A stretch of DNA of 64,000 nt from Selaginella moellendorffii (lineage: Eukaryota > Plantae > Lycopodiophyta): NCBI RefSeq assembly GCF_000143415.4, contig NW_003314369.1:372001-436000 (forward strand). The letters are read 5' to 3'. Below, one piece after another: positions 20,451-22,649 of this stretch. The notes beneath the pieces are model-generated. The model did no database searches. It was not told where the DNA came from and saw only the letters and a program-made list of their open reading frames with translations. The translations under genes were made by a program, and so were the position numbers. The first letter of the stretch is position 1, and the number at the start of each line of letters is the position of its first letter.

Positions 20451-20768
20451 TTAGTTCTTGATGCAGTGGTCCTTGCTCCATTTCCAGCCAAACTGGCATT
20501 GGTGGCACTTGTTGTTGTACCAGTACCAGTTGCTCGGGCAACTCACGCATTTGCTTCCACTCCACTTCCATCCGGAGAGGCATCGGTGGCAATCGCTGCT
20601 ATACCAGAACCAACCTTTGGGACACTGAATGCACTTGTGGCCATCCCAGTTCCATCCAGATTTGCATCGCTGCTGGGCTGCTGCGTTTGCGATGCCACCG
20701 AAGTCCACTCCAACCAGGAGGATTGTCACAAACATGGCCAGAAGCATCAGTTGGGACTTGCTCGCCAT
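20451..20768 (-). CDS. Small secreted Cys/Trp-rich repeat peptide (105 aa; five C-x3-W-x-W-x4-C-x2 units)
   Basis: Hydrophobic signal peptide ending ANAAA, then CKSGWNWDGHKCIQ CPKGWFWYSSDCHR CLSGWKWSGSKCVS CPSNWYWYNNKCHQ CQFGWKWSKDHCIK; conserved in paralogue. Confidence 0.85.
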   Translation of the reverse strand: MASKSQLMLLAMFVTILLVGVDFGGIANAAAQQRCKSGWNWDGHKCIQCPKGWFWYSSDCHRCLSGWKWSGSKCVSCPSNWYWYNNKCHQCQFGWKWSKDHCIKN

Positions 20769-21337
20769 TGTATCGTCAATCTAGAAATGTAAACTAATTG
20801 CTTTTCTTGTATCTCTTCTTTCTCTTGATTAACTGCTTTGCTGGGTTCTGCCAATGTGTACCAATTTATATGGAGGAGTTGAGGCTGAGTCCAAGTAAGA
20901 CAGCTATGCACACGGTTTTTACTGCGTCTCTGGCAAGACATGTCGTGTTTGTGCTCGATTGACGGGGTCAATCCAAATGAAACAGTCTCAAGATTCCTAT
21001 TTAAGTCCATGAAATCATCAAAAGTTACGAGTTATGCATTAAATATGATAATATTTTTAAAGGTAAATAGGCAAGAAATTTACGAACCGTTAGAAACAAA
21101 AGACACCCAATTTCTTGTTGGAAGGAGAGAAATGTAGATTAGAGTCTGGGCACAAGTACGAGTGGACTTTAAATACCTTGTATATCCTGAATGAAATCTC
21201 AGAGTAAAAGTGAAACTGGCAGCTGGTGCACACTTTTTCTACCTCTTGTTACTTGCCAAAAGAACATAGAAAACGGCAAAAAAAAAAAGAAATTCCCAAG
21301 AAAAAAGTGGGTAAGGGATGGCACCAAATGAGTGCAC

Positions 21338-21433
21338 AGAGAGAGAGAGAGAGAGAGAGAGAGAGAGAGAGAGAGAGAGAGAGAGAGAGAGAGAGAGAGA
21401 GAGAGAGAGAGAGAGAGAGAGAGAGAGAGAGAG
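21338..21433. repeat. (AG)n microsatellite, about 48 units
   Basis: Pure AG run. Confidence 0.97.
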
Positions 21434-21666
21434 CGAGCAAAGAAAACACTTGATTTGTAATGCAAATAAGATGTGCATAAACTCAATCAAAAGTAATTTT
21501 CTCTACAACCAAGTATTTATACTACATGCCTCCAACCCTTCTATAGAATTTGTATGCTTCAGTAGCAAGTGTCTTGTTAAGCAGACTCTGCATGAGCTTT
21601 AAAATGGGATGTCATGGAAAGAAAAGCACACACATTTTATTCACCCAAAGGTTACAATGATCATTG

Positions 21667-21960
21667 TCATTGACATCCTATATGAACTTGGATCTCGATG
21701 GGCAACTTCACATACCAGTACCAGTTGGTCGGGCAGCGGTGGCAAGAACCCGAATACCAGTACCAATTGTGCGGGCATTAATATCGCTGGCAAGAATTGT
21801 TGTACCAGTACCAGCGGAGCGGGCAAGAGACGCACTTCTTCGCATCCCAGGGCCATCCCGGCTTGCATCGCCTCTGGGCGCTCGCACTTGCAATTCCTCC
21901 AATGTCAACTCCCACCAGGAGCACCATAAACATCGCCAGCAGCATCTTGTTGCTCACCAT
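21667..21960 (-). pseudogene. Third Cys/Trp repeat peptide gene, stopped after two units (60-aa ORF 21778..21960)
   Basis: Signal peptide + CKPGWPWDAKKCVS CPLRWYWYNNSCQR, then TAT TAA, then in-frame CPHNWYWYSGSCHR CPTNWYWY... Confidence 0.7.
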
Positions 21961-22331
21961 CTTTAGAACTTTCCTAGACTTGCGTAGAGAAACTAACTTT
22001 GATGTGCTTGAGTGCGGGATTGACCGCGTCTTATAAGGATAAACACGTTCAGTTCCGGATGACTCGTTGACTTTCTCAACGTTAAAAAGTCAAATGTTAT
22101 GTGAAACTGCGAAACAATGAGGTGACAGAAGGATGGAAATCAATTGACTTGAATTACCTCAAACAATGGCCGGCCTTGTCCATCCATAGCATTTTCAAAA
22201 CAAAGTTTTTATGATTTATGAGGTTGAGAGTTCGAACCTCTCTCACCCCATTTTTTCTCCCAATAAGTTTGCAATTTTATTTAAATCAGATTTAAAATCA
22301 TAGAACAATTCATTTTGTGCCTCCAATTTGG

Positions 22332-22649
22332 TTAGTTCTTGATGCAGTGGCCCTTGCTCCATTTCCAGCCAAATTGGCATTGGTGGCACTTGTTGTTGTA
22401 CCAGTACCAGTTGCTCGGGCAACTCACGCATTTGCTTTCACTCCACTTCCATCCGGAGAGGCATCGGTGGCAATCGCTGCTATACCAGCACCAGCCTTTG
22501 GGACACTGGATGCACTTATGGCCGTCCCAGTTCCATCCAGATTTGCATTGCCGCTGGGCTGCTGCGCTTTTGATTCCGCCAACGTCCACTCCAACCAGGA
22601 GGATTGTCACAAACATGGCCAGAAGCATCAGCTGGGACTTGCTCGCCAT
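22332..22649 (-). CDS. Small secreted Cys/Trp-rich repeat peptide, paralogue of 20451..20768
   Basis: 105 aa with the same five repeats; flanks ~22190-22985 duplicate ~20275-21060. Confidence 0.85.
   Translation of the reverse strand: MASKSQLMLLAMFVTILLVGVDVGGIKSAAAQRQCKSGWNWDGHKCIQCPKGWCWYSSDCHRCLSGWKWSESKCVSCPSNWYWYNNKCHQCQFGWKWSKGHCIKN

Follow-up and report, generated by a model that had tools for sequence, protein, structure and literature searches.

A transcribed, locally duplicated family of putatively secreted cysteine- and tryptophan-rich peptides with predicted hairpins in the lycophyte Selaginella moellendorffii

A cluster of genes for short peptides rich in cysteine and tryptophan was studied in a 64,000-nucleotide stretch of the Selaginella moellendorffii genome (contig NW_003314369.1, positions 372,001 to 436,000 of the forward strand), and this whole stretch is referred to below as the window. 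Three related reading frames were found on the minus strand of the window, at 20451-20768, 21641-21960 and 22332-22649, and are called genes 1, 2 and 3. The original prediction, made from the letters of the window, had described three genes on one strand, each encoding a secreted peptide made of a 14-residue repeat. The three reading frames lie at the coordinates and on the strand that had been given, but the middle one is broken by an in-frame TAA. Genes 1 and 3 are real intronless S. moellendorffii genes, transcribed from the minus strand. The features of the locus are listed below.

20451-20768, minus strand: coding sequence of gene 1, intact, single-exon, 105 amino acids, made up of a putative signal peptide of 31 amino acids and a mature part of 74 amino acids with five 14-residue Cys/Trp units predicted to be hairpins.
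20384-20822, minus strand: approximate transcript of gene 1, about 440 nucleotides without intron, based on the read depth profile, the lack of splice joints and the molecule ends at 20822.
20864-20870, minus strand: TATAAAT box of gene 1, from a motif scan, about 45 nucleotides upstream of the RNA 5' end (20822).
20407-20412, minus strand: AATAAA polyadenylation-type signal of gene 1, from a motif scan, about 40 nucleotides past the stop codon; coverage declines over approximately 20384-20467.
22332-22649, minus strand: coding sequence of gene 3, intact, intronless, 105 amino acids, with an extra Cys at position 54.
22727-22733, minus strand: TATAAAT box of gene 3, from a motif scan.
22276-22281, minus strand: AATAAA signal of gene 3, from a motif scan.
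21781-21960, minus strand: first part of gene 2, with the ATG at 21960, encoding a similar putative signal peptide and two hairpin-type units (60 codons); zero RNA depth and no TATA box.
21670-21777, minus strand: remnant of gene 2 behind the stop codon, consisting of a full even-type unit and a further unit in which the closing Cys is missing, with unrelated sequence after it.
20350-20972, unstranded: duplicated block A, comprising gene 1 together with promoter sequence (about 200 bp) and 3' flanking sequence (100 bp), from a blastn comparison with block B.
22219-22819, unstranded: duplicated block B, gene 3 with its flanks.

The proteins encoded by genes 1 and 3 were 92% identical, with 18 nucleotide differences per 318. 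Residues 1-31 of both contain a lysine at position 4, a hydrophobic core of 15 residues and the small residues A-A-A ahead of Gln32, and when judged by eye this N-terminus looks like a classical signal peptide. The mature part of 74 amino acids consists in both genes of five exact 14-residue units of the form C-x3-W-x-W-x4-C-x2. For gene 1 the mature peptide has 10 Cys, 10 Trp, a net charge of +8, an isoelectric point (pI) of 9.1 and 20% aromatic residues, so that the proposed cationic character was confirmed and the proposed composition of 10 Cys and 10 Trp in five exact units holds for this gene. It does not hold for all three, since gene 3 has an eleventh Cys and gene 2 is truncated. Codon 54 of gene 3 (22488-22490) encodes Cys, compared to Phe in gene 1 (F54C) and Tyr in a paralogue on another scaffold, here called L001, and brings the mature Cys count to 11. 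The odd number of cysteines could mark the gene 3 product as impaired or dimer-prone.

In a six-frame translation of the window, the strict motif C-x3-W-x-W-x4-C-x2 occurred 13 times, all within the three genes. Odd units read S/F-G-W-[NK]-W-[DS] and even units C-P-x-x-W-[FYC]-W-Y. This alternation, which had been proposed for the cluster, was found in gene 1, gene 3 and the L001 paralogue. The 28-residue super-repeat derived from it is usual but not obligatory, because the units of gene 2 are ordered odd-even-even-even. With a signal peptide recognised by eye, a mature part of 74 amino acids, 10 invariant cysteines and no other domain, the products have the general features of plant secreted cysteine-rich peptides.

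Transcription of gene 1 was evident from stranded raw RNA-seq reads (run X16, of which about 12% was read). Mean depth over the gene was up to about 100, compared to 1.3 in the other orientation, and the orientation of the first mates was consistent with RNA from the minus strand, assuming the usual dUTP convention. The 1.3 kb between the genes had zero depth in this run, and no splice joints were found among its reads over the locus. Ends of RNA molecules accumulated at 20822, downstream of the TATAAAT box, and coverage stopped near the AATAAA signal. Three further runs, which came from three different studies, gave contigs with sequence of gene 1 and/or gene 3. For gene 3, RNA contigs of run X4 spanned 22221-22643, and raw-read depth reached 15 in the 3' half of the gene. 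The reads on gene 3 differed from the reference at 22410 (13 of 16 reads) and at 22438 (15 of 15 reads), and the reads on gene 1 carried the minority variants F54Y, S58N, S70N and D100G. The variant letters on the two genes show that at least one further near-identical copy, a haplotype or a paralogue, is expressed. Transcription of gene 3 itself is supported mainly by the contigs of run X4.

The coding frame is under purifying selection. The ratio of non-synonymous to synonymous substitution rates (dN/dS, omega) between genes 1 and 3 was 0.20, with nine synonymous and nine non-synonymous changes (binomial p 0.0017), and in comparisons of genes 1 and 3 with the paralogue (L001:10001-10300) it was 0.23-0.28 (binomial p 3e-5 to 3e-4). 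None of the other five frames had an omega as low as that of the annotated sense frame. Among the paralogues, all 10 Cys columns and 9 of the 10 Trp columns were invariant. A lack of transcripts and neutral evolution between the paralogues had been named in advance as the outcomes that would speak against the proposed family. Neither was observed: the genes were found to be expressed and dN/dS to lie at 0.20-0.28.

Genes 1 and 3 lie in a duplicated unit of about 620 bp. Blocks A and B were 86.6% identical over 636 columns (blastn), and their coding parts 94.3%. Gene 2, located between them, has an in-frame TAA at 21778-21780, directly after codon 60. No TATA box was found for it in the motif scan, and no RNA read or contig from any of the four runs corresponded to it. 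Gene 2 is thus either a pseudogene or, in the best case, a remnant of two hairpins that is not expressed. The paralogue at L001:10001-10300 (GenBank scaffold GL377566.1, assembly GCA_000143415.2) is an intact single-exon reading frame of 99 codons with five units, of which the fifth is C-x12-C. Its alignment with the window was confined to coding sequence (161 nucleotides). Two intact copies and one broken copy in the window show local duplication with decay of one copy, and one further intact copy lies on another scaffold.

Public gene records have missed or mis-modelled the family. A word-based protein search with the peptides of the window returned one match, a mis-modelled Selaginella paralogue. 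SELMODRAFT_403507 (P0001; L001:10001-12028) joins the first 34 codons of the L001 peptide gene to spurious downstream exons. The RefSeq entry XP_024531936.1, 'putative pectinesterase 11' (P0002), is mis-modelled as well: its initial 52 residues are 98% identical to gene 1 and are followed by a pectinesterase, a first exon like that of gene 1 having been fused to the pectinesterase gene. At L001 a pectinesterase gene (L001:6758-7965) lies about 2 kb upstream of the peptide gene, so that a pectinesterase adjoins a peptide gene at two other loci of the family (L001 and P0002). No pectinesterase was found in the 64 kb of the window. The proximity at the two loci may be functional, or it may be left over from segmental duplication.

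Some further features of the locus were set apart from the genes. Two open reading frames on the plus strand, at 20307-20792 (161 amino acids) and 22317-22673 (118 amino acids), overlap genes 1 and 3 codon for codon. They were rejected, with an omega of 1.87 compared to 0.20 for the sense frame, and are artefacts, by-products of the codon usage of the sense strand. An (AG)50 microsatellite of 100 bp (97% matches) at 21338-21437, between gene 1 and the broken gene 2, gives rise to long spurious Leu-Ser and Arg-Glu reading frames on both strands. Both duplicated 3' flanks contain, on the plus strand at 20348-20381 and at about 22220-22250, a piece of 31-34 nucleotides resembling the T-arm and the acceptor 3' strand of a tRNA. 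In runs X1 and X4, RNA contigs in which unrelated flanks surround the 20348-20381 piece were abundant, and this piece is therefore part of a repeat or of a tRNA-derived element that is expressed elsewhere. ARAGORN and Rfam detected neither a tRNA nor an RNA family in the flanks.

The product was modelled by AlphaFold2, both as precursor and as mature peptide. The confidence score (pLDDT) was 81.5 for the precursor (86-90 within its mature part) and 86.0 for the mature peptide modelled by itself, from alignments that were only 3-5 sequences deep. Both models contained five beta-hairpins in the same register, W-x-W-x, a two-residue turn and x-C-x-x, which would place the second Trp opposite the closing Cys across the hairpin. 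Five disulfides are predicted, one per unit, each joining the two cysteines of its own unit (C-x10-C). Pairing within the unit is favoured because the first and the last Cys of the peptide are single, giving five complete C-x10-C units, and because the fifth unit of L001 (C-x12-C) shows that loop length varies inside a unit. It is also favoured because the matches of the units in the Protein Data Bank (PDB) were dominated by the N-terminal hairpin C-P-x-x-W-x-x-Y-x-x-x-C of the C-type lectin-like domain (CTLD), a hairpin that is closed by a disulfide between exactly its own Cys pair (C-x10-C). The disulfide-closed beta-hairpins of the original prediction were in this way supported at the level of structure prediction.

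Searches with the models by shape gave no significant match, and elongated flexible repeat rods superpose poorly in such fold comparisons. The best match of two models in the PDB by Foldseek was Fu1-Fu2 of RSPO2, with an expectation value (E) of 0.07-0.12 and a template modelling score (TM) of 0.27-0.38. Other weak Foldseek matches were TNFR cysteine-rich domains (CRDs), EGFR, the Eph CRD, ELAPOR1 and a Chlamydomonas mastigoneme. In a VIA-align comparison of two models with 48,161 chains the best Z was 2.5, for the mGluR CRD (root-mean-square deviation 2.8 over 46 residues), with UL144 and HVEM also returned and none of the matches significant. The ESM Atlas gave TM values of at most 0.37 by shape and scores of at most 0.83 by features, the latter to clusters of DUF5874/CBM_14, Furin-like and ELAPOR1-like proteins, again without significance. 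All of the weak signals lead to a single class, that of extracellular strings of small hairpins pinned by disulfides, and none of them establishes membership.

A mechanism can be outlined from these properties. The 31 N-terminal residues would direct the product into the secretory pathway, with cleavage expected ahead of Gln32. The released 74-residue peptide would fold into a rod or ribbon of five beta-hairpins joined by two-residue linkers, as the sequence and the models suggest, and each hairpin would be closed by the disulfide of its own unit, as in the CTLD hairpin that it resembles. The outcome would be a protease-resistant, strongly basic (+8) scaffold presenting about 15 aromatic side chains. 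Such a scaffold could act in apoplastic defence, through contacts of Lys and Arg with anionic groups and insertion of Trp into membranes, adhering to microbial surfaces, and/or through stacking of Trp and Tyr on chitin, glucan or other wall polysaccharides. Local duplication and decay would have diversified the gene family.

An apoplastic defence peptide binding microbial membranes and/or wall glycans is accordingly the function put forward here, with roughly an even chance of being correct. A charge of +8, a pI of 9.1 and 20% aromatic residues are typical both of cationic antimicrobial peptides rich in Trp and of carbohydrate binders with aromatic platforms, and defence was taken as most likely from the way in which cationic Trp-rich peptides and aromatic carbohydrate-binding surfaces generally behave. 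Several observations weigh against this interpretation or the data beneath it. No significant match to any antimicrobial or carbohydrate-binding family was found in Pfam or the PDB, and Chitin_bind_1, defensin, thionin and similar families gave no Pfam match even at E values up to 10. The shallow alignments behind the structural models and the reference mismatches in the gene 3 reads count on the same side.

The peptides might instead bind the wall of the plant itself, for example de-esterified anionic pectin or cellulose, as a structural component or a cofactor of wall remodelling. Their basic and aromatic-rich physico-chemistry would fit this as well, and the pectinesterase beside the peptide gene at L001 and in XP_024531936.1 is the sole hint in its favour. 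That neighbourhood may be a mere relic of segmental duplication and is not repeated in the window, and no similarity to known plant wall proteins was found; a role at the plant's own wall is considered unlikely. Slightly further down the scale, and rather improbable, is a role in signalling as a receptor-kinase ligand comparable to EPF, RALF, LURE, STIG1 or SCR. Small, secreted, Cys-rich, lineage-specific and tandemly duplicated products are typical of plant peptide ligands, and the closest fold class, the Fu repeats of R-spondin and the TNFR CRDs, consists of modules for protein-protein recognition. However, the variable number of units, the formation of pseudogenes and the high expression better fit birth-and-death evolution of the defence type, and conservation among the paralogues spans the whole scaffold and not one epitope.

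The tandem units are exact and each is complete in itself, with a Cys pair of its own, which could also suggest a polyprotein precursor that is cut into five disulfide-cyclised Trp hairpins of 12-14 residues, comparable to the multi-copy precursors of Ib-AMP. The linkers are only two residues long (IQ, HR, VS, HQ) and contain neither dibasic nor conserved Asn/Asp cleavage sites, spacer propeptides are lacking, and AlphaFold2 modelled one continuous confident chain, which makes processing of this kind very improbable. Zinc ribbons in place of disulfides are scarcely credible: the spacing C-x2-C-x10-C-x2-C equals that of RanBP2-type zinc fingers (PROSITE pattern) and the zinc fingers of Nup153 gave a weak PDB match (E 0.023), but the Cys spacing alone is common to both, the Asn and the W-x-C signature of the finger (W-x-C-x2-4-C-x3-N-x6-C-x2-C) being absent, the N-terminus resembles a signal peptide, the lone Cys at either end of the array gives five full C-x10-C units and not Cys4 sites, and every other weak match was an extracellular disulfide module.

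Beyond the proposed role in apoplastic defence, a wider and more tentative reading can be formulated. The family could represent a lycophyte-specific class of defence or lectin peptides built of strictly periodic one-disulfide hairpins with a Trp dyad, in which the number of units is tuned by duplication and loss and the aromatic ribbon provides a new means of recognising wall glycans or the membranes of microbes. Bacterial or protist surface proteins of the same 14-residue period may share the module or may have been its source. To our knowledge, plant cysteine-rich peptide families such as defensins, thionins, heveins, snakins, RALF and EPF come almost entirely from seed plants. A model lycophyte is here found to have a multi-copy family that is expressed and under selection, and whose members have been overlooked or wrongly modelled in gene annotation. 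If the peptides are antimicrobial or glycan-binding, they would offer a compact, modular and readily synthesised scaffold of 14-residue one-disulfide hairpins and a case study in lineage-specific innovation of innate immunity.

Comparison with known families placed the building block among hairpin modules already described, although no family was matched at threshold. A Pfam scan of all three products gave no family at threshold. Below the gathering thresholds were DUF4215 (PF13948; 17.5 and 17.0 bits, threshold 27), DUF5874 (PF19202; 13.4 and 13.6 bits, E about 0.1, threshold 27.1), TNFR_ELAPOR1_6th (PF23091; 14.3 bits, threshold 33.2) and Ephrin_rec_like (PF07699; 9.8 bits, threshold 23.1). 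Sequence searches of the PDB, with a profile and with a single 28-residue unit, gave nothing significant (E 0.0035 to about 1). The CTLD N-terminal hairpins that dominated the matches were those of NKG2D, LOX-1, convulxin alpha, CD23 and CLEC12A, and in the search with the 28-residue unit every match was of this kind. The lack of a match to a characterised family, as originally predicted, was thus borne out in Pfam, the PDB, Foldseek and VIA-align. The description of the repeat as unfamiliar could not be fully upheld, given the sub-threshold DUF4215, DUF5874, TNFR_ELAPOR1 and Ephrin_rec_like matches and the existence of metagenome arrays with a 14-residue period.

These arrays were found in an exhaustive profile search of 1.84 billion representatives, in which 73 proteins scored at E values up to 0.001. 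The only plant proteins recognised among the 73 were the two mis-modelled Selaginella entries; the remainder, as far as they were looked up, were repeat proteins from metagenomes and one hedgehog protein. The E-values of this search are inflated for a Cys/Trp-rich repeat, because a multihaem cytochrome c (8e-16) and Cys-free proteins with GWTWD repeats also scored; the false positives further included a junk-like reading frame, P0010. The metagenome arrays P0003, P0008 and P0043 have a 14-residue period and gave gapless BLASTP alignments of 69-72 residues at 38-40% identity. P0008 and P0043 lie on short contigs whose gene surroundings were uninformative. P0003 (L002:3001-5187, on a 1.83-Mb contig of a bacterial metagenome-assembled genome) is the nearest non-plant look-alike of the Selaginella array. 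It is a protein of 728 amino acids with about 17 tandem 14-residue C-x2-C-P-x-G-Q-H-Y-Y units at its C-terminus and no Pfam match above threshold, and the adjoining gene has a weak N_methyl (pilin-type) match. Three secreted-looking metagenome proteins of about 135 amino acids, P0016, P0020 and P0034, consist of Cys-free P-x-G-W-T-W-D-x-x-G repeats with a period of about 14, and thus resemble the odd units in their G-W-x-W-D core, though no disulfide is present.

The C-x10-C(-x2-C) framework is common to the Selaginella peptides, the DUF5874-type repeats and the metagenome arrays (P0003, P0007, P0008, P0043). The odd units exactly fit C-x2-G-x2-W-[ND]-G-x2-C, the motif that is covered by DUF5874 in P0007. 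In these arrays, however, the repeats are modules of large proteins (200-1900 amino acids), mostly of bacterial or unknown origin, with one aromatic residue per unit, whereas the Selaginella array makes up the whole of a putatively secreted protein, is strongly basic and carries a W-x-W dyad in each of its units. Descent from an ancestor shared with the bacterial arrays is unproven.

The Furin-like, TNFR and ephrin-receptor-like repeats (R-spondin Fu1-Fu2, HVEM, CD27, the EphA2 CRD, ELAPOR1, the mGluR CRD) resemble the predicted fold of the Selaginella peptides, being extracellular strings of small disulfide-pinned beta-hairpins with C-x2-C-P-x-G-aromatic motifs. No other classes came up in Foldseek, VIA-align, the ESM Atlas or the Pfam matches below threshold, and TM values did not exceed 0.39. 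Their modules are longer and irregular with interleaved disulfides, in contrast to the strict 14-residue period, the single predicted disulfide per unit and the Trp dyad of the Selaginella units. The hairpin of the long-form CTLD is similar in another respect, as the even units match C-P-x-x-W-x-x-Y-x-x-x-C, some with a preceding C-x2, at equal C-x10-C spacing. Only this hairpin of 12-19 residues is common to both (E about 1 for a single unit; query 48-82 at best), no Pfam Lectin_C match was found, and the helices, the WIGL core and two further disulfides of the CTLD, a domain of about 120 amino acids, are absent. The CTLD hairpin is best regarded as a structural precedent, not as a sign of membership.

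Plant antimicrobial peptides (hevein-like, defensin, thionin, snakin, Ib-AMP, puroindoline) share with the Selaginella family a signal peptide, a small basic disulfide-rich product and an organisation in multigene clusters. They differ in their Cys framework and are not tandem modular proteins with a variable number of units, and no match to them was found in Pfam or the PDB at E values up to 10. This includes hevein/Chitin_bind_1, whose 8-Cys framework is set apart from the repeated C-x10-C-x2 spacing of the Selaginella peptides. The chitin-binding strand of hevein has the form S-x-W-x-W, like the S-G-W-K-W of odd units; this likeness is a lead only and was supported by no search. The literature searched, including by locus tag and by literal peptide words, held nothing on a Selaginella hairpin-peptide family.

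The building block of the family is a known kind of cysteine-rich hairpin module. Three features distinguish the Selaginella family: a stand-alone, putatively secreted peptide consisting of units only, a W-x-W dyad in each unit and a strong positive charge. No family combining the three was found in Pfam, the PDB or the literature searched. The Selaginella peptides are best described as a new, lineage-restricted family of putatively secreted plant cysteine-rich peptides, made from generic Cys-hairpin modules.

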